From positions 1 through 64,000 of the forward strand of contig DF237322.1 of NCBI GenBank assembly GCA_000708835.1: a DNA stretch of 64,000 bases, read 5' to 3'. The translations under genes and the position numbers were made by a program. The notes under the pieces were generated by a model that saw only the letters and a list, made by a program, of their open reading frames with translations, did no database searches and had not been told where the DNA came from. How positions within the stretch are numbered: position 1 is the stretch's first letter; every line of letters starts with the position of its first letter. The DNA is from Klebsormidium nitens. Taxonomy: Eukaryota; Plantae; Klebsormidiophyceae. Below are positions 17,001-34,800 of the stretch, in pieces.

Positions 17001-17953
17001 AACGGATTGCAACAACATGTAAGGCAAGGCATACATTATCAACATTCCTGTAGTCTCACTAAGAATGTGACTAGCAGTGCCGGCGTGTGACTTCCCTGGA
17101 CTCTTAGAATGAACACATTTGCATGACCCCATTGGCCAGGTGCTGTGCTATTAGCCGAGTAGTGCATACCTGAGTCTGCAGAAGAGCCTTCTCTGTCTGC
17201 TCTCGGAGGAGCTCAGCTTGCAAGCGCCCAGTTTCGGATCGCAAAGTGTTGATCTCATTCTGAAGTCAAATGGTGACATATATGAGTACAATGAACGGAG
17301 GTCAGGAAATCTTCCACCGCAGCTTACTAGTTCGGTGTTTGTGTCCTAGCTTTTAGATGCGCCATGCTTCAGCATTGCCTACTTGTATTCTTGCAGCTGA
17401 AGCGACAGATACTTCTGGTTAAGAAGAAGCAGGACGGAGCATCGCAAAACCCTTTGAAGCAATGCATGGACGGTCAACAATCACCTCAAGGGCTCTTCTC
17501 CAAATGTTTGGATCTGGTCTGGCCTCCTCGTCTGTGGCTCCATTCTCATCCTCCTGGACTGGTGCAGCGGCATGTGCTGACTTATCCTTCTTCTTCCTGA
17601 ACTCTTCTAGCTGCATGATCCATGCAAGAGTACATGTAAGTAGAAGAACTTCAAAGATTAAATTGCTGCCGCTTGAAGCGGTCAGTAGCCAGCCGCCAGT
17701 GCGCAAGGAGTGAAAACTACATGGAGGACAGCGCTGATCAAGGTTCTACCGCACTCTGAATCAGCATAGCGCTATCAGCAATGACACATCATGTCTGAAC
17801 AACAGATAAGTACACATGGCCCTACAAAATGCTCTAACCTCCTGGTCTAGGGCTTTGCAAACATGCCAAAGATGGCGCAGCGCCCTGGAGCACAGCAAGT
17901 GTATATCCCCTTACCTTCCTTTTGCCCGCAGCTGCCAAATCTTGCTTCTTCAT
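14042..17953 (-). CDS. Long coiled-coil protein (golgin-like / plant 'myosin heavy chain-related' type)
   Basis: About 12 GT-AG exons: MKKQDLAAAGKRK | LEEFRKKKDK... | NEINTLRSETGRLQAELL | VQQVEKNTGSIKSQLERVE | AEELASSLRRNIE | EEEQYRAEEDTAALRAE | ... | KLLTE | IDSQSLEIERLFGEN | ... | ANLSRA | YQPLLSGIESKLLQLR*. Heptad-rich throughout. Confidence 0.8.
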
Positions 17954-18802
17954 CCTGGTGGTGGTGCACTGGTCGCAGTGGTGGATCCGAAGCTCCCACC
18001 CTGCACCGCCACTGCGCCCAAGTAGCGGACGCCGGCGACCTCCCTCAGTGTCACGGCTGAAAACATCCATGAGCCCCGGGCCGAGACTCAGAGCTGAACC
18101 CTAGAAACGGCTAGCTCAGGCTGCAACTAGAGCGGGGGCAAGTTGCTTCAAGCAGTTCAAGTTGAATGCGTGCCATCACGAAGTTTGGCGCGAAGTTTTC
18201 GAAACATGGGGACGATCAACTTGCAAAGAAGGCGCAACATTTTGATATGCCGCATTCAGCTGCATCTTCATTCTGTCACTGTCAATTGCAGCGCCATAAG
18301 TGGTGCAGAAGCGAGGAGTCGGGCAAGAGGGGACCTCTTGGCAATTGCAGTTGCAGATAGGTACAGTTCCGATTAGAGCGGCGCAAACAGAATCAACTTC
18401 AATACAGCATCCCGACCGAAAAAGAGTAGTTCGTGTGATTGTTCAAAGAGACTTGGTGGTGGGTGCATTCTGCAGCACAGGCGAGCATCGCAAATTTGAG
18501 GATCTCATTCTGCGCTGAGGTGGCAAGTTGCCGAAAGCAAGCAATTTGACCAAAACTAGCCTATCTGATATAGCAGCTCCAGTCAGTGTAGGTTGTAATC
18601 AGCAAGAATCTAGAAAATCACAGCGCCAATCGCAAGCCAAAGGTCTTCGCAAGTTACCTGTCGTGGGGCCAAATAGCACAAGCAATTACCCAACCTTTTG
18701 GACCCATTTCTGCGTCGCTCTAGCCTAGAGTCAGCTTCTCAGCGCTATTGGGGTCAATCTGGTAATTTTGAACCCATGCTGTTGATGGCGCAGTGAGGGG
18801 AG

Positions 18803-19916
18803 ATGATGGCAACCAGTGCCTCCCCTGTGCGGTCCAGCTTGCTCTGCGGGGGACTCCAATGGGCAGATCGCACCAGCCGTTCAGACTGTGTGGGAGACCG
18901 GGCAGGAAATTGCTTTGAAAATTTACCATCAAGTTCGGCTAAGACCAATGAGATTTGGGCACCACCACTCAGGCAACTGCGCTTTCAATGTACTTTACAA
19001 GGGAACACATGTCGGCCAAGCACACAACTTTTGAGCCATCGAATCCCTCTGGCACCCCCCCAATTACCGCGCAAACAGAGGTGTGTGCGCCAATGCGTAG
19101 CCAGGGGTGGCGCATCCTCCGCAGAGCCTGCTGCCCTAGCGGGCAAGACTGCGGCTGGATCGCACACGCGGGTCGTGGTCATTACTTCTGGGAAGGGCGG
19201 GGTCGGGAAGACGACCGCGACTGCGAATGTGGGCATGTGCCTGGCGCGCATGGGCAAGGAGGTGATCCTGATTGACGCAGATGTGGGACTGCGCAACCTG
19301 GACCTGCTGCTTGGGCTGGAGAACCGCGTTCTGTACACGGCCATGGAGGTGCTCGCGGGGGAGTGCCGGCTGGAGCAAGCGCTCGTGCGCGACAAGCGCT
19401 GGCCCAACCTGAGCATCCTGTGCTGCTCCAAGAACCGCCAGCGCTTCCACCTCTCCCAGGACCACATGCGCATGATCGTAGACAGCCTGCGCGCGCGGGG
19501 GCCTGACTTCATCCTCATCGACTGCCCCGCCGGGATTGACGTTGGGTTCCAGAATGCGGTGGCGCCGGCGGAGGAGGCCATCATCGTGACCACGCCCGAC
19601 ATCACGGCCATCCGCGATGCGGACCGCGTGGTGGGCCTGCTGGAGGCGTACGGGTACCGCGCGATCAAGCTGATGGTGAACAAGGTGCGCGAGGACATGA
19701 TCGTGGAGGACAAGATGATGAGCGTGGAGGACGTGCAGGAGATGCTGTGCATCCCCTTCCTGGGGGCCATTCCCGAAGACAAGGAGGTCATTGTGTCCAC
19801 GAACCGCGGGGAGCCCCTCGTGCTACGCCGCTGGCTCACGCTATCAGGCAAGGCGTTTGAGGAGACCACGCGCAACCTAGTCAAGGGGGATGATGGGGAT
19901 GCGGGGGCGCAGCAAG
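18803..19916 (+). CDS. minD: Plastid-division ATPase MinD with an N-terminal transit-peptide-like extension. Single 1114-nt exon, either spliced to the downstream permease or read through to the stop at 20005.
   Basis: Ser/Arg/Ala-rich ~120-aa leader, then VVVITSGKGGVGKTTATAN (deviant Walker A), DADVGLRNLDLLLGLENR, DFILIDCPAGID, VTTPDITAIRDADRV, STNRGEPLVL. Strong donor CAAG|GTGAGC at 19916/19917. Confidence 0.95.
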
Positions 19917-20229
19917 GTGAGCAAAGGCCTTCGTCTAGTCACTCCTTGGGTCCAGGCTTACCATGTCGGTGCGCAGGGCATGGGGAGGCGCCTAAGAGGC
20001 GTTGACGACCGTTGACTGTTCATAGCAATGGGGGCTTGTGAACTATGAAACTCAAGCTGTGCTCTCCTGCTTTCTACCGACAGAGTGAAAGACTCTGAAA
20101 TGCAAGGCTGATCGGAGCTGCAAATCTTTGCACAATGCGGTGCACATGGGGTCTCAGGAAACCATGAGCGCAACTTTGCAGACCAAGGGCGGTCCAGATC
20201 TCGAGGCCTTTCCGTTTTCCTGCCCGCAG

Positions 20230-22652
20230 CGCTGTCCCCTGTGTCCGTGAGCAGCCCCGGGTCCCTCTGGGCTGCGGTGGGCCTAGTGATGGGCACCGCT
20301 GTCGGTCCCGGCATCCTGGGCCTGCCCGCTGCCGCGCTGCCGGCGGGGCTCGTCCCATCCACGGTGGCCATTGTGGCGGCCTGGGCGTATGTGGTGGCCA
20401 GCGTGCTTCTGGTGGCGGAGGCAACCATCCAGGTCATGCAGGAGACGGGGGCCAAAGAGGTGGGCGCTCGTGGGCATTCACAGAGTGACACTACGGTGCT
20501 CACCATTCTGGTGCGAAATCTTGAAGCCTGCAATTACCCGGTGTGGGCATAACTGCATCGCCCAAGTTAGCGATCCGGTAGGATTGGTGTCAAAAGGCGG
20601 TTTGAAAGGGCACCAACATTCTTCACAATCGTCCTGGATGCTTGGAGCACGCGCGAAGGCCAAGCATCATCTTCCTCTGCTTGTCACCACTGCACATGGC
20701 CCTTTGTGTGGAGCCTATTTTGTGTCCTCAGCTAGGGGAAGCGTGCTGACTACACCCCGTGCCTGGTGCTGCAGGTCAGTTTCACCGGCCTGGCCTCGCG
20801 CTCGTTCGGTCCCGTGGGGGGCCAGGTGGTGGCCGTGGTGTACGCTGCCCTCAACTACTCGCTCCTGGTGGCCTGCATCGCGGGCCTGGGGGAGATTGTG
20901 GGCAAGGTTCTAGGCTTGCCCCCAGCAATCGGCTGCGCCGCCTCAACAGGTCAGCGAGCTAGAGCCCTCCACCGTAGACAGCTGTAACGGGTTGGCTTTT
21001 GCACTCCGTTTCTCGTCTCAATGACGAGGACGAGGCTACCTCTGAGTGCTGCCAGAATGTACGTGACGAGAGTCGGTCGCTCAAAACCGCAATCCTGAGA
21101 TAACACGGACAGTTCCTGAACCTGTTCTTGCCAAGTCGGTGAAGTCGTACACAGGGGATGCAACTGGCTGGACAATCTGATCCGAAGGTGCAAAGTCGTT
21201 TGGCCCTCCCGCCGCTCCTCACCTTGCCGGCCTCTCGTGCAGCCCTGGTGGGCGGCGCCGTGCTGGCCGCCCCCTTCCCCGTGCTGGACCTCTCCAACCG
21301 GGGCCTGTGCGCACTCATGCTCCTCTCCCTGGCCGCGCTCACCTCCTTCGGGCTGCCCCACGTGGCCCTGGGCCCCGCCCTGCAGCGCACCGCGTGGCGC
21401 GAGGTGCTGCCTGCGGTCCCGGTCATGGTCCTCACGCTGGGCTTCCACGTCATCACGCCCCTCATCTGCAGCGTGCTGGGCGGCCGCCCCGCCAAGATCC
21501 GGCAGGCCATCCTGGTTGGAGGGGCTGTCCCGCTGGCCATGGTCCTCGCCTGGAACACCATCGTGCTCGGGCTCGCCAAGCAGGTGGGCATCGGGCTCGT
21601 GCTCGGGCAGCCAAGGAGTGACGGGGCCGCCGAGCGTCAACGAAGAGCTTGAGTTCCTATTTGCGGACCCGGATATTGGATTTGAGGCTTCGGTGCGATT
21701 TGAGAAATCTGCCCAAGCTGTTCTTGTAAGGACAAGGGCGATCGACTAGTCGCGTTCGCTGGAAAAAATACCGAACAGAAGGGGTTAACAAAGCGTCTGG
21801 TTCGACGTCACTTCTGATGATGGTTCTCGCGACATCCGTGGTCCTCTTCGTCCGCTCTTCACTCACGGGCATGTCTTTCTGTGCTCTTGCCAGGCCTCCG
21901 CCAGCGCCAGCATCGACCCGATCGCCCTCCTCTTCTCCCTGCGCAACTCCGCGGCCCCGGCGGTCCAGGCATTCGCCTTTGCGGCGCTGGGCACCACTCT
22001 GATCGGTTACTCCCTCAGCTTCCCCCGCCAGCTGGCAGACACGGCCGCCATGCTGACTGGCAGGGACCCCACCCAAACTGGGCCCCCACCGCAACTAGGC
22101 GGGGGGCCGCTCAGCCTTGAGGGATCCCTCAACGATGACGTTGCACCGGCCGTCGAGGAGGCGGCTCCGGGGCGGACGGGACCCGTTGCTCTGCTGCTGA
22201 CGTTGCTGCCGCCGCTGCTGGTGGCCGCAACGGTGCCGGCCGCCTTCGCATCGGCAGTGCAGTTTGCAAGCATCTATGCAAACTGCTTCTTGTTCGGGGT
22301 GATCCCCCCGCTCATGGCGTGGCAGCTCCGGAAAGCGGCTGGGGACAGGTGAGATCACACCAGAATTGCTGTGCCCTGCTGATACCCGCCTTAGTAAGTC
22401 GTAGCTAGTGCCCAACGGGAAGATGACCCACCGTCAGATCAATTCGTGCTTCGTGGTCAGCTGACGTTTGGGTTTCTTTAGAAAGGCCGTTCGCCCGAAT
22501 GTCTCATTGATGCATGTCTCATACAACCCTGCAGCGCTGATGGCGAGCGCCCCCGCTCCAAGGTGGAGACACTACTGCCGGGGGGAGCTCCCGTGCTGGC
22601 GGCCCTTCTAGTGGTCGCCCTAATACTGGGGGTGTTCCCACCACGGCGATAG
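20230..22652 (+). CDS. Tryptophan/tyrosine permease family (TyrP/HAAAP) multi-pass transporter domain; no independent start codon found
   Basis: Exons 20230-20459, 20775-20949, 21243-21583, 21894-22348 and 22535-22652 have mutually consistent phases. Motifs: PGSLWAAVGLVMGTAVGPGILGLP, GFHVITPLIC, DPIALL, AFAFAALGTTLIGYSLSFPRQLADT, YANCFLFGVIPP. Confidence 0.9.
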
Positions 22653-25077: not shown

Positions 25078-28000
25078 ATGGCTGAGTGGCATTCGCAGGT
25101 GTTGCACCTGTTGTACGAATCCTTTGGGTGGATTGCATTTTTGTCATGGTCAGTAAGTTTCTGGCCACAGGTGTTGTTGAATTACAAGCGAAAGAGGTGA
25201 GCGCAGAACTCTGTGCATATGCTCCGCCTGATTCCTCAGATTCACCTGGTTTGGAGGATGTGCAATGCTGCGGCGGCATCTCAGATTCCTGCCATGGTCC
25301 GAGGCAGGGGCATCAGCTAAGGACTTGCATCCCGGAAATATTTCTGACATGAGGGCACAAGGGGACTGGGGCAAATTGGTAGTCATGTGGCTCAGTGCTG
25401 TCCTGCTCGACCAATCCCCCCTTCTTCAGTGTCCGGCCAGCTATTGACCTCTTTCTGTAGCAATTCGAAAACCCTTTGATAAGTTTGGTGGGGCGACTAT
25501 GCTGGCGGCTGAGCCCAATGTTCTAGGCCCCCATGGGGCACTCTTCCTGGGGGCATTTGTTTCTCAGACGATGTGCTTTATCTTTGATTGACGATGATAC
25601 TTCCGATGCGGTCGTGAGTCCCGCTCGCTGGACCCGCCCTGACACCTCGCCTGCTTGTTGCCCTCAGTGTGGTTGGCCTCAACTTCGATTTCGTTGTCCT
25701 CAACTTCACCAAGCACTCGTCGTACCTCGTCTTCAATGCCGCCATGTTCTTCAGCCCCACAGTGCAAGCGCAGTACCACCGCAAGTACGGCCCCGACGAG
25801 GTGAAGCCCCGCGGCATACACAGTGTCCGGCAGGCTCTTTGTGATGCCTCTATTCCAGAATATTCTCAACTCTTGATTCTTAATTTTCATCTGTGGTTAC
25901 AAGGCCTGTCGATTCACTGCTCAGGCCTTAGCTTCTGTGATGGGACTGACAAGGAGCCCGCCTGTCAGCTGCTGTTGGTGGTACAAGACGGTGATGTGTG
26001 GCCTGCTGTGCCTGCAGCTCATCCCGGTGGCGCCCAGTGACGTTGCCTTCTCAGTGCATGCAGTGGCCCTCACGGCAGTCACACTTGTCCAGCTCTGCAT
26101 CTACCAGGTCAGAATTTCTGCTGATAGCTCCTGCCTGCAGAGGCTCCAGTTCTTTACTTTCTGCTTGCCATGTATTCCCTTTTTTGGGCTGGATACATAG
26201 TGTTTGGGTCTTGGAAAACGGGTAGCTGATCTGGCCCCGCTGATCCGCCGTTTCCCAAAGCCTTATCTCGCAAGGGATAAACGCCTCAATCTGCTCACGA
26301 ACGACTTTAAATCTCTTGTGCTTATGAGACAAAAGGAGCCCCGTTTCACATAAAACGGGGCCTGCTTTGCAAAGCGCCGCTCAAGTTGTTCATGCTGCTA
26401 ATCAGTGTCTGTGTTTCTCCTCTCCAGCGTGGGGCCCAGAAAGTTTCTTTCTCCGCACGCGTTATCACAGCGCTCGCCTGGACGGCTGCGGCAGTGTTCC
26501 TGGTATGGCAGGGTGCCGCACACCACCGTTGGCTTGAGGTCGTCACCTTCTTCAAGTGAGGGCCGCCGCGCTTCAGAAGAGTCGCATCCAGACCCGTCGT
26601 AGAGACTCTGATCGATTGGCCCGGCTTTGACAGTCCAGGTACTTCGGAGCTTCGAAACTGCTTGAAACCACAACATCCGCTTGAGCGTCCCTACCATCAA
26701 ATGCCTGATCGGAAGCCGACTTCTCCCGCTACTTTGATGGGTGCTGGCTCGAACTTCTAACCACGTTTTTGGCTTCCCTCAGCGATGTTTGTGCTTACAA
26801 ATCTTCTCATTCGGAGTTGCCTGCCGAGCTGCTGGTTACTGTCAAACCCATCGTTAAGACCCTGTCCGGTGCGTGCCTTTGCAGCTACATCCAGTTGGTG
26901 ATGACCAGCATCAAGTACATTCCGCAGGCCTGGATGAACTACCGCCGCAAGAGTACCGACGGCTGGAGCATTGAGAGTGAGCGAGCCACGCCAGCCCCCT
27001 TGTCATTTTGATTGAATTCATGAAGGGTTAGCGCCGTGACGGGTAACTGGGGCGGGTGGGGTTGGCTAGGGGGTTAGGGTGGGCACGGATGTGGAGCATG
27101 TTAACCATTGGTTTAGGTTTTAAGTCCAAGTGTTTCTGTTACCCTCCATGGAGCTTGCCCTTCATGAATTGAGACTTATCCCCTTGTCCCGTGTCTTTTC
27201 CAACTGCTCTTACGAAGCAACTAAGTAGCTGCAGGTCTGCCTCTCGCTGCTGCTCCTGCTGACGCGGCAGCTGCGCACTGTGTGCAGACATCCTGCTCGA
27301 CTTCACGGGGGGGGCATTGTCGCTGGCCATGATGATCCTGCAGTCAGCGGACCAAGGTGCGGTGCACGCACCGCGCACACCCGTCTCGACTGGAGAGTGC
27401 CAGGGAGACGCTCTGCTTGCTGTTGTCTTTCATACGCCACAGTCCGATCCCCTCGTTTTTGCTCCTGGGGGTCCGCTTTGTGGCTACCCATCCCGTCCAT
27501 CTGATTCGTGTTTCGCCGTATTGGGAGGCGTGCATAAGCAAGCGACCCAGTACGTTGTTCCTTTGAACAAGCTCGCGTGTCCAATCTACGACATACCTCC
27601 CGACGAGTCGAACAATTTGTCTCTCTAGCCGCGAGGCTTTATCCCTTCCCATTCGTTTAGGTCTCCATCTTTCCCTCTGTCCATCTCTCCAGGATCACTG
27701 CAAAACCTCGTGGGCAACGTTGGGAAATTAGGACTTTCTCTGGTGAGTACTTTTCTTGGAGGCGCAGCTGCTTTCAAACTTTTGGCTAGGCCCGGCTGGT
27801 TTCTAAATCACCGCAATACAGAAAGCCTTTCAGTCATTGGCCTCTGGTCGGCAAGTTCCTCCCTGGAATGTTAAGCTAGCATCCAGCCGAGGTTAAATGT
27901 CCAGATCGCCTCTGTCGATTGTCACTTCAGTTTTCCTCTATGTCACCCTCATGTAAAGCAAGGAATCTTGGAGTGTACCGAATCAGACCACGGGCGCCAT

Positions 28001-28231
28001 CCTTTGCGATTTTAGGCAAGCTTTCGTGCGACACCCGCTTTCGCATGTTTTCTTCAACCTTACAGACTACCATTGCTTATCATTTTGCAGGAGGTGATGT
28101 TATTCGATGCGTTTTTTATTCTCCAGCACTACGTACTGTATACGGATAGAAGCAGCCGCACTGTAGAATCGGCAGCGCCTAAGGTTGTAGAGAAGAGCGA
28201 ATACCGAGCCGTGGATGTGTCAGAACATTGA
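25078..28231 (+). CDS. CTNS: Cystinosin-like PQ-loop vacuolar/lysosomal cystine transporter
   Basis: Eight exons giving [82 protein letters not shown] and FDAFFILQHYVLY. Stop at 28229-28231. Confidence 0.94.
27025..27083 (+). repeat. G-tract cluster (potential G-quadruplex) in a cystinosin intron
   Basis: Eight runs of at least 3 G in 59 bp, including GGGTTA and TTAGGG telomere-like words. Confidence 0.55.
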
Positions 28232-31857: not shown

Positions 31858-34800
31858 ATGTCGTCTGACGTCAGACGGCCGCTGCTTTCAAGAAGCGAAA
31901 GTTGTCATCACTTGGGCGCACATCTAGATCATCCGTCGGACCATCACCATGGTAAGATACTCCAAACAAAGTCCTCCTCTGTCTATTGTGCTTGTTTTTG
32001 TTGAAGAAGTGAAGTGCTTGTATGGCAGTCCCATGCCGGAAGGCAGCTTCTCAGACCTTGTGTGTTACATGCAGGGTTTGGTGCCAAGAGCATCTCGTCC
32101 TGGGGGTGAGCTCTTTTAACCGCTCTTCCTTTTGACCAGTTCCATCTGTTGAGGCCTCTGATACATGCCTGGTCTGGATTGCTTCATCAGCTTCTGGTAA
32201 TTTTGTTGATTCTGTCACCAGAGTGCATCTCAGTCACGCTAGCTCAGGTGTCCTTGTACTCACGGCAATTATACATTTCAGGTCAGCTGCTCTTATCTAC
32301 AATGGCGCCACTGGCACGGCGATGGTGGTGTTGCCCCTGTTGTACCAGCAAGCAGGCTGGGTGACCCCCACCATGGGCTTACTAACCATGTACATTCTCA
32401 GTAGCTTTGCGGCTGTAAGTACTCATGAAACCTTTGTTTTATGTCTTCCTGTTCCCTTTGACTGGTGCAATTTACAGCTTCTGAGGCAGAGATCAGGGCA
32501 CTGGACGCAGCCTGGTGCAATGGTACAGCAACGATTGTGGTAGACATGCTGATGCCTGAAATTGCATTGGGCAGGGACCTGCATTGCATCATCTGGAAGC
32601 TGATTTTTTCTTGTCTTGTGTGCAGTCCATGCTTTGCGAAGCCATTCAGCGCATTCCTGGAAACAAGGGGTTCAGCCGCCGCTGGGAGTACTGCAATGTG
32701 GTCAACCATTATTTTGGGTCTGCCGCGTACATGGCCGCCCAAGTTGGATTCAACCTCACCCTCCAGGCTGCAAACATTTCGGCGATGATTGTCACCGCCC
32801 AGGTACAAGATCAACTAACAGTTCGCTATATCATTTTTGGCGCTGACAAGAGCATTAGCAGTCAGAAGAGATCATTCAATCATATTATGCTCGTCCCTCT
32901 GGCGCCAGTCAAGAGCTCTAGTGGTCAAACCCTGGACCCCAGTCGTCGTAGTCGTCCTGGAGATTTTCAGGGCAATGTAGAAGTAGAATCTCCAACGTTT
33001 GTTAGAATTCATTCTCAATCGTTGAGTATTTGACAGGCGCAAAGGGCACGATATCTGCAGCATTGTGTTGCTGGAGCAGTGGTGGAAGCGCGGAAAGTCT
33101 TTGTGAAGCGAACCCCCTGAGATTTCTCTTCCACAGAGATGCATAGCGCATTATGCCTGCAGAATTGTGCTTTTAATTGCCTCTAGGCCACACCAAGCTA
33201 ACACGTTTCGGCATACGTCGGTGGTAGGAAGTACAGAAGACCCCCCTCCTCAAGAACTCCCACTTTACAAGAAGGTGTTTCTGAACTTTGTGAGTGCCAA
33301 AAGATTCCGTCCTCTTAGCCTTGTGACACAAGACTTTGTGCTTGTTTTGGCACCACCGTCATCTGCGCAAATGCTTCCTCCAGGTAATGGACGGCTTTGT
33401 GAGGGACCAGGTGGGGGCCAGCTATGCCATCCATTATGGAGCCTGGCCACTCAGCTTTGTGCGCTCTGCCTCGCTGGACTCAGGCTCCGCCTGCGCATGG
33501 GGCGAGCTGCCGGGCGGCGGCTGCGACGCCAATGTTATCTCGCTTGGGTGAGTGCCTGCCACAACTCCACTCGAAGCCATGCTTGGCTGCACGGCAAGCC
33601 GATGTTGACTCCGTGCCTGATGCATACAGATGATTGTATTCTCGTACTTCGGGTTTTGTGAGCTGTGGCCCAGCTTTCTCCTGTTTCATTGAATGATTTC
33701 GCATGCCTGTTTGCCACTGCTCAACCTGCTAGAGCTGTCCCCCTAGAGCTGTCCCCGTCTCGGGCGCTGACTGGCCTCCGTTTGTGCGGTGGGGCAGGTT
33801 CGTGCTGTGCATGGCCATCTGCATCCCCTTCGGCTGGCTCAACCTGGAGGACAACATGGGCTTCCAGTGGCTGTCGTGCATCGGCACCATTGTGTTCACC
33901 TTCGAGTTCATGTACGAGTTTGCAAAGCGCCTCATCCCTGGGGCGCCCCTCTACTGCCCGGGGAACGGCCCCTCCCGCACCCCGCCCTTTTTACTCCAGC
34001 AGCACCAGGTGAGGGACAGCACGTGGAAGTGACTGAGCGCGAGGACCAGAGCGTGTGTTTTCAACTGTTTGCCCGAATGAGAATCGTTGTGAAAAGTTGC
34101 CGTTGGTCGGTGCAACGTAGGTGCTGGCTGACCCGGTTGTGGTGCCGTTGCAGGTGTTGGGCATCTGTGTGTTTGCGTACAGCTACGTCTGCACCGTTCC
34201 ATCCTGGCTCAACGAGAAGCGCCCAGGCGTCAACGTGAACCGCTCGCTCTGGCTTCCAGTTGCGGGCGCGCTTGTAACATCCCTGGTGAGTTTACAAGCC
34301 TCTTGCCAGCGCTGGATTGCGAGCCTTCGCAGGCAGGCCCTGGCCCCTCAATTTGTCTGGCTTCGGGCCAAACCCGTCGACCAGGGCAGTCATCTTCGAC
34401 ACGCTTCTTCAACGTCATTCCACCTCCAGCTCAGTCGACGTTCACCACTTCGCTCTTGTGATGCCTCCACTTCAAGGCTGACTCGTCCGGCACCACTTCG
34501 AAGGCGGCTACCCGCATGTCCGGTCGTTTCTACTTGCTTGTATCTGGAAAGTCTTCTGTTTGTGCCAGGAGTTTCAATGCGACCGGTTTCCACGACGACC
34601 GGTAATTGCATGGGCACCCGAAACGTGTGCTGCTCAGCTCGGGCCCCTTTCTGCGCACTTTGTCGCTGATGCGCTCCCGTGGTCGCAGGTGGTGGGTTTT
34701 CTAGGCGCCTGGTCGTATCAACTAGTGGACGTGGGGGGACACGCGCTGAGCGGCGCGGAAGACATTCTCAAAGTGCTGGATGCCAAGGCGGCCCCCGCCA

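Follow-up and report, generated by a model that had tools for sequence, protein, structure and literature searches.

Two cases of a transferred organelle gene lodged in a nuclear gene are among the closest described systems to the one considered here: in grasses, mitochondrial rps14 within nuclear sdh2 (credited in PMC1543663 and PMC7488351 to Kubo 1999 and Figueroa 1999), and in Passiflora, plastid rps7 within trx-m3 (PMC7488351). Canonical function of MinD depends on reversible membrane binding (PMC6803595), and its membrane-targeting sequence (MTS) is described, in the citation of Szeto 2002 in PMC6803595, as conserved across bacteria, archaea and chloroplasts. The minD gene is among the plastid genes lost on the lines to Klebsormidium and Entransia (Lemieux et al., PMC4877394). 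Here we analyze a locus at 18803–22652 of the Klebsormidium nitens scaffold DF237322.1 (assembly GCA_000708835.1), the first 64 kb of which form the stretch studied (the window), where a reading frame for a presequence and MinD is followed on the same strand by exons of a tryptophan/tyrosine permease. It is probable, in our assessment, that these constitute one genuine chimeric nuclear gene, the mRNA of which joins presequence and MinD in frame to exons of the Trp/Tyr-permease family. This reading is carried by direct observations on the architecture of the locus, on its conservation in relatives, on purifying selection acting on both halves, and on the lack of an independent start for the permease.

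Architecture and Public Annotation of the Locus

When spliced computationally, the six exons, all on the forward strand, total 2433 nt, i.e. 810 codons plus the TAG stop, in agreement with the initial annotation. Exon 1 (18803–19916) is a single open reading frame (ORF) that begins at ATG 18803; an in-frame TGA lies at 18794, nine bases before this ATG, and the frame is then open through 19916. It comprises an N-terminal presequence (amino acids 1–120; 18803–19162), a complete MinD ATPase core (amino acids 121–360; 19163–19882), and the short acidic tail KGDDGDAGAQQ together with the first base of the join codon (19883–19916).

Intron 1 (19917–20229) divides MinD from the permease. Its donor, CAG CAA G/GTGAGC at 19916/19917, and its pyrimidine-rich acceptor, TTTTCCTGCCCGCAG/CG at 20229/20230, are both in phase 1, and the coordinates, phases and 313-nt separation first proposed for this pair stand after re-reading. 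The join codon (G+CG) encodes alanine, and the predicted junction-spanning peptide stretch is GDAGAQQALSPVSVSSPGSL. A position weight matrix was derived from the 20 other donors in these genes, which themselves score 9.0–14.4; the MinD donor AAG/GTGAGC reaches 9.7 bits and so falls within their range. The GC content of intron 1 is 0.55, and that of the four undoubted introns is 0.52–0.57. If intron 1 is retained, MinD runs on for 29 non-conserved codons to a TGA at 20003–20005. Rfam and repeat scans of the locus gave nothing relevant, with no Rfam match in intron 1.

The downstream exons cover the permease in order. Exon 2 (20230–20459; PF03222 positions 4–66) encodes the linker ALSPVSVSSPGS, the first transmembrane helix (TM1; LWAAVGLVMGTAVGPGILGLP) and TM2, and is followed by intron 2 (20460–20774), with a donor GAG/GTGGGC and an acceptor CTGCAG/ that are both conserved. 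Exon 3 (20775–20949; PF03222 positions 65–110), exon 4 (21243–21583; positions 131–241, 80.9 bits) and exon 5 (21894–22348; through position 364, with a low-complexity loop of ~90 residues) are separated by introns 3 (20950–21242) and 4 (21584–21893). Intron 5 (22349–22534) precedes exon 6 (22535–22652), which supplies the final transmembrane helix and the stop codon TAG at 22650–22652, and whose C-terminal VFPPRR is common to four of four relatives. The splice sites of introns 3, 4 and 5 are likewise conserved in relatives.

The public GenBank model for the locus is GAQ87727.1, a “Tryptophan or tyrosine transporter protein” of 666 residues (DF237322.1:19235–22652), which was reached through a search with exon 4 in a representative library, where it is in the same 90% cluster as a 100% identical ORF. 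GAQ87727.1 shares with the present reading the 19916–20230 junction (GAQQ-A-LSPVSV) as well as all four introns downstream of it. It begins at an internal ATG (19235–19237; MCLARMGKEV), and 144 codons are omitted from its 5′ end, including the 120-residue presequence and the Walker A motif. Because this methionine falls downstream of the Walker A motif, the model is 5′-truncated, its start codon having been called too late. The entry is named as a transporter only, its MinD content is unrecorded, and no separate MinD gene is annotated. The K. nitens annotation combined SPALN mapping of transcript assemblies with Augustus gene prediction (PMC4052687), and the junction in the public model may have a transcript behind it or may not. 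The initial annotation had stated that no fusion of MinD with such a permease was described; this holds for the literature, where we found no paper discussing a MinD-permease fusion or GAQ87727.1, but not for GenBank, where the fused model is already present, mis-started and unremarked. What is unusual is organelle-gene hitch-hiking that yields a predicted fusion.

Conservation of the Junction in Related Genomes

Relatives of the locus were found through the cluster of a 97%-identical MinD ORF from Logan assemblies, and comprise four genomic or metagenomic contigs: L001/L002 (SRR14092359/60), L003 (SRR23617307), and L004 and L005 (JGI 3300060284). They fall with the window into two groups, {window, L003} and {L001, L004, L005}, separated by a synonymous divergence (dS) of about 0.45–0.55. 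In all relatives the permease comes after MinD in the same orientation, and the MinD donor CAAG/GTGAG, the acceptor YnCAG/C, phase 1 at both sites and the alanine join codon are retained, as are the remaining four donors and four acceptors. Splicing of the homologous exons leaves the fused ORF intact in each (810, 813, 811 and 811 residues), with an identical C-terminus. These data, together with the junction in GAQ87727.1, uphold the proposal that presequence, MinD and permease form one spliced gene, since sites, phases, ORF and adjacency are all kept in the four related genomes.

The boundaries of this conservation are sharp. It ends 5 nt past the donor and begins again precisely with the acceptor. 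Even between the window and L003, its closest relative, there is no sequence relationship 5′ of the acceptor, and 3′ of it the differences are mainly synonymous (CCT/CCA, GGG/GGC, CTC/TTG). The spacers differ in length (313 nt in the window; 359, 573, 508 and 560 nt in the others), and their similarity between groups is at the level of shuffled sequence (local score 12 versus 12.2 ± 1.7). The read-through tails that follow the donor (29, 7 and 10 codons) are unrelated in sequence.

Both halves evolve under constraint. The ratio of nonsynonymous to synonymous substitution (dN/dS; Nei-Gojobori, between groups) is 0.034 for the MinD core and 0.156 for the permease, values from which we conclude that both halves are functional genes under purifying selection. 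The presequence has a dN/dS of 0.6–0.7, and its ORF stays open in L003, L004 and L001, all indels being in frame. It opens with MMATSASPVRSSLLC, is rich in serine, threonine and alanine, and has few acidic residues. By composition it is probably a plastid transit peptide, and the combination of high dN/dS with exclusively in-frame indels is typical transit-peptide behavior.

Start of the Permease

The initial annotation held that the permease has no start codon of its own, and in the window this proved correct. The permease frame contains a TGA at 20109–20111, and the next in-frame ATG is only at 20289–20291, directly preceding the GTAVGPG motif midway through TM1; the remaining ATGs in 19917–20229 run into stops or sit out of frame. 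A permease initiated at Met 20289 would be without TM1a and without a targeting peptide. The codons of exon 2 that lie 5′ of any methionine evolve as coding sequence, with a dN/dS of 0.12–0.37 and one 6-nt in-frame indel.

A hidden first exon for the permease was sought in the spacers as a mini-exon that opens with an ATG and reaches a phase-1 GT without a stop. In the window the top-scoring donor of this kind has −1.6, L003 has none, and the other three contigs give −0.9, 3.7 and 6.0; with no usable donor and no conserved spacer element, this candidate was rejected. Phase-1 donors within exon 1 through which MinD could be skipped score 2.9–5.5 at best, and none is common to both groups. Without a conserved internal phase-1 donor, exon 1 does not support a MinD-skipping isoform. 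One such donor had been proposed near 19104; its GT is in fact at 19107–19108, which would make 19106 the final exon base, and the site (GGG/GTGGCG) scores 2.9 versus 9.0–14.4 and reads GC rather than GT in L001 and L004, so that the proposal fails.

Several points weigh against a single fused gene. The second group has an in-frame methionine (SMWAAVG) just upstream of TM1, and in L003 the spacer (about 2190–2270) is open in the permease frame, with ATGs (MDLFEIL and MQYLILDSPLA) contiguous with exon 2; in these lineages either might conceivably serve as the start of a separate permease. The protein collections yielded no Klebsormidium protein that is spliced or spans the junction when searched with the 400-residue unspliced MinD ORF, the permease part of GAQ87727.1 (lengths up to 1165 residues) and a 201-residue junction-centered piece. 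The matches were confined to unspliced genomic ORF calls of Klebsormidium-like organisms, a result that is neutral with regard to the fusion. Metagenomes scanned for a protein piece across the junction and for a degenerate DNA pattern of the spliced form gave no match, in a collection that seems to lack even the JGI sample behind L004 and L005, and exact look-ups of the window ORFs in the collection were equally without a match. The GenBank model may derive from Augustus only, and predictors do merge neighboring genes. The relatives amount to two independent groups, such that conservation of phase counts roughly as one or two observations rather than five. Finally, permanent tethering would set this MinD apart from that of bacteria, which binds and leaves the membrane in an ATP-driven cycle.

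Some of these points would suit a locus at which two neighboring genes have been wrongly merged, with MinD ending at 20003–20005 and the permease having a promoter in the 313-nt gap and a downstream or non-AUG start. Predictors often fuse close genes on the same strand, and the missing spliced protein, the methionine before TM1 in the second group and the in-frame ATGs of the L003 spacer would all fit. However, the SMWAAVG methionine and the L003 ATGs are lineage-specific, the latter being absent from the window, where the first in-frame methionine removes TM1a and leaves no targeting peptide. Conservation sets in abruptly at the acceptor, and the codons 5′ of any methionine evolve as coding sequence. 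The 9-mer at the donor is retained although the sequence around it has diverged, for which we estimate a chance of ~2% at a dS of 0.5. No candidate first exon exists. From the read-through stop to exon 2 just 224 nt would be left, a gap far below the distances between coding sequences at the neighboring genes (850 nt and 2.4 kb), and MinD would end in a variable tail without an MTS. In the sequences compared, neither feature that would mark a gene-prediction artifact is apparent, namely an own start or first exon downstream, or a conserved upstream stop. Two separate genes are thus improbable in our assessment, and a single chimeric gene is preferred.

The MinD Core and Its Missing Membrane-Targeting Sequence

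The MinD core matches the Pfam families ParA, CbiA and AAA_31, and is 40–73% identical to canonical MinDs. Its residues 3–240 align to residues 3–240 of Aquifex MinD (4V03 and 4V02; E value 2e-67 for 4V03), and E. coli MinD (3Q9L) aligns over residues 2–247 of 270 (E value 3e-55). The deviant Walker A motif, SGKGGVGKTT, is at residues 130–139 of the 810-residue product, and is kept in L001, L003 and L004. A Foldseek search with the N-terminal part of a modeled GAQ87727.1 ranked the MinD structures 4V02 and 3R9J top. In the AlphaFold2 model of GAQ87727.1 the confidence is poor for MinD residues 149–235, which is probably an effect of the mixed alignment used in the run and of the truncated N-terminus.

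The C-terminal amphipathic MTS is the only part missing from this MinD: the exon ends 11 residues past the last core helix (sequence RNLV, homologous to RRLVG), whereas the plastid-encoded MinD of Streptofilum and Mesostigma continues for ~25 residues after RRLVG, through KG(M/L)(F/L)xR(I/V)QxFL. The spacer was searched for an MTS micro-exon or a conserved element and neither was found; the read-through tails are not MTS-like. The C-terminus of MinD seems, from the sequences available, to be in flux across Klebsormidiophyceae. The plastid MinDs of Hormidiella (P0016) and Streptosarcina (P0009) have unusual C-terminal extensions of 60–130 residues. Streptofilum and Mesostigma retain the canonical membrane-targeting helix and end soon after it.

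In the predicted Klebsormidium protein the MinD core is connected to the permease by a linker of ~23 residues, which is acidic, Ser/Pro-rich and poorly conserved (dN/dS ~0.3), and which is probably disordered. Such a linker might be cut after import of an 810-residue polyprotein precursor, giving free MinD and a separate permease. Its length, composition, poor conservation and probable disorder are consistent with this, and a cut would restore a freely cycling MinD, but the alignment reveals no cleavage motif conserved between the groups and the released MinD would still be without a membrane-targeting helix. To our knowledge, no such processing of streptophyte plastid proteins has been described. 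A precursor of this kind is therefore the least likely of the readings considered, and we regard it as very improbable.

Products of the Transcription Unit

If the preferred chimeric gene is accepted, the main question becomes a quantitative one, i.e. the share of the spliced fusion versus that of transcripts in which retention of intron 1, or termination within it, gives free MinD. One transcription unit could have two products, with much intron 1 retention or polyadenylation yielding a free soluble MinD of ~400 residues, and with the spliced form mainly supplying the permease with a promoter, start codon and transit peptide. This arrangement, which can coexist with the fusion, would be a variant of rps14/sdh2 and rps7/trx-m3. 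Transferred organelle genes that share a host presequence by alternative processing are known (PMC1543663; PMC7488351), an in-frame stop occurs 7–29 codons past the donor in every lineage, and the requirement of canonical MinD for reversible membrane binding (PMC6803595) would be satisfied by a free form. On the other hand, the read-through tails are unconserved and without a membrane-targeting helix, and intron 1 holds no conserved element. A full-length transcript that retains intron 1 would have a premature stop upstream of four exon junctions, making its decay likely, and there is, unlike in the precedents, no conserved donor for a presequence-permease product without MinD. Taken together, this evidence leads us to view two products as rather unlikely, although appreciably less so than a merger of two genes.

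The most far-reaching form of the preferred single-gene reading is that the only MinD of Klebsormidium is made solely as a permease fusion, in which the permease anchor replaces the MTS, ATP-driven membrane cycling is absent, and the whole derives from an in-frame minD transfer. In that case a Min-type division-site system would operate with MinD anchored in the inner envelope at all times. This more specific proposal we consider possible, with the balance tilted slightly against it. The product would be a plastid-targeted protein of ~810 residues consisting of a transit peptide, MinD without an MTS, a flexible linker of ~23 residues and a polytopic APC-fold permease. That the spliced mRNA is the main product, that the protein is located in the plastid and that the permease serves as an anchor is what we infer from the combined observations.

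The Permease Half and the Topology of the Predicted Fusion

Exons 2–5 match the PF03222 profile (Trp_Tyr_perm) with 44.5, 30.3, 80.9 and 46.4 bits, respectively, against a curated cut-off of 22 bits, and cover profile positions 4–364 of 393 in order. In the AlphaFold2 model of GAQ87727.1 the permease helices form a confident helical bundle (predicted local distance difference test, pLDDT, >90), and the exon 5 loop is below 50; the relative placement of the domains was not drawn on. Foldseek searches with the permease model returned the APC-fold amino-acid transporters BasC (6F2G), LAT1, AdiC and LAX3, with target template modeling scores of 0.6–0.73. In the literature searched, we found no report of the substrate of any plant or algal member of the family.

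In APC-fold transporters the N-terminus preceding TM1 is on the cytoplasmic side. This side corresponds to the stroma for a protein of the inner envelope, such that the topology of the fusion would be coherent with the site of action of MinD. After import, MinD would be positioned at the inner envelope facing the stroma, with the permease in place of an amphipathic helix as its attachment. In a stronger version, the transport state of the permease would also feed into the choice of division site, as the initial annotation had raised in coupling aromatic amino-acid flux to division-site selection. A hitch-hiking origin with the permease as an anchor explains the facts more simply and with fewer assumptions than does coupling of flux to division.

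The plant and algal “tyrosine-specific transport protein” homologues examined carry their own extension of 100–180 residues contiguous with TM1, and no MinD domain was found in any of 150 representatives and 120 homologues of the permease. Where homologues are long, they are instead fused to unrelated domains (integrase/SH3, Sua5) or have long presequences. Two of the long homologues have N-terminal fusions to a retrotransposon integrase/SH3 (P0136) and to Sua5/YrdC (P0192), respectively. Both probably stem from gene models wrongly merged in other genomes, and they show that the long “fusions” in this permease family are not all real.

Origin of the Gene

The best matches of the nuclear MinD are the plastid-encoded MinDs of Streptofilum and Hormidiella, at 73% identity. 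In a tree of the MinD core, the Klebsormidium nuclear MinD groups with the plastid-encoded MinDs of Hormidiella and Streptosarcina (84/92 support), which is moderate evidence only, as the tree is small and its branches are long. The loss of minD from the plastid genome (PMC4877394), the 73% matches and the tree agree with what is expected of a hitch-hiking gene, i.e. one that is lost from the organelle and whose nuclear copy is nearest to organelle-encoded copies. The shared-presequence architecture would fit hitch-hiking, with one presequence and no second start, but the Klebsormidium presequence shows no similarity to those of permease homologues (best E value 0.11), and the plastid location of both parts is only a prediction. 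As far as the sequences can tell, a shared exon giving two proteins by alternative splicing does not seem to be part of the Klebsormidium arrangement.

These observations suggest a sequence of events in which minD would have exited the plastid genome within Klebsormidiophyceae and integrated into the 5′ coding region of a gene that already encoded a permease of the plastid envelope, gaining a promoter and a targeting peptide at the landing site, while sequence 3′ of the MinD core would have turned into an intron. An ancestral intron at the junction was considered and rejected, as in the orthologues of Marchantia and Capsella TM1 is not preceded by an intron. For the same reason intron 1 is likely, judging from these orthologues, to be a later, lineage-specific feature, and the intron position gives no clue to history. 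The stem branch of Klebsormidium MinD measures 0.88 changes per column, yet the protein is near-invariant within the genus (dN/dS 0.03). This pattern suggests a burst of change after transfer or fusion, with tight constraint thereafter.

Neighboring Genes and a Second Acceptor-Like Stretch

The locus is flanked by a divergent CCDC39-like gene, with its 5′ end at 17953, and by a PQ-loop transporter gene on the forward strand (25078–28231). Further downstream, ~9 kb from the fusion locus, a second amino-acid-transporter-like gene begins at 31858 (forward strand; 591 residues, weak Aa_trans match), with the PQ-loop gene in between, such that three membrane-transporter genes are found within 14 kb. 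A 24-nt pyrimidine-rich stretch at 17909–17932 of the window (forward strand; GCCCGCAG/C), near the 5′ end of the CCDC39-like gene, is 75% identical to the exon 2 acceptor at 20207–20230. The likeness is probably due to chance, or the stretch is the acceptor of an intron in a 5′ untranslated region.

Comparison with Known Systems

Should the fusion exist as a protein, it would constitute a natural experiment on the tenet that MinD binds the membrane reversibly via a weak amphipathic helix, with the MTS replaced by a permanent anchor while the ATPase core stays under very strong constraint. It would also be a clear, datable case in Klebsormidiophyceae of a plastid gene becoming a working nuclear gene by in-frame insertion into the gene for another plastid protein. 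There is a practical consequence for surveys of plastid-division genes that use the K. nitens protein set: these meet MinD only inside a “tryptophan or tyrosine transporter” that is truncated at its 5′ end and has no Walker A motif.

With respect to canonical MinDs (E. coli; the plastid-encoded proteins of Mesostigma and Streptofilum; nuclear AtMinD1), the Klebsormidium protein shares the full core with the deviant Walker A motif and the strong purifying selection. Canonical MinD ends in an MTS of the KGLLKRVQQFL type, whereas Klebsormidium MinD is without it, and a polytopic membrane protein follows instead. The permease in turn is similar to its plant and algal homologues (Marchantia BBN18936, Capsella XP_006295609, Mesotaenium ME000058S08621), with 47–52% identity over the whole PF03222 domain and a common TM1 motif, GTAVGPG(I/M)LGLP. 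It differs from them in that the homologues have a presequence of their own and no MinD, and in that the Marchantia and Capsella orthologues lack an intron before TM1.

In rps14/sdh2 and rps7/trx-m3, an organelle gene is found inside a host gene whose product serves the same organelle, and uses the promoter and targeting peptide of the host, which resembles what we propose for MinD. In those systems the transferred gene is intronic, and alternative splicing gives two separate proteins. In Klebsormidium, by contrast, presequence and MinD form one uninterrupted ORF, the sole strong conserved donor of which joins it in frame to the permease to give a predicted fusion. If borne out, the Klebsormidium gene would extend these precedents from a presequence shared by alternative splicing to a stable chimeric protein.

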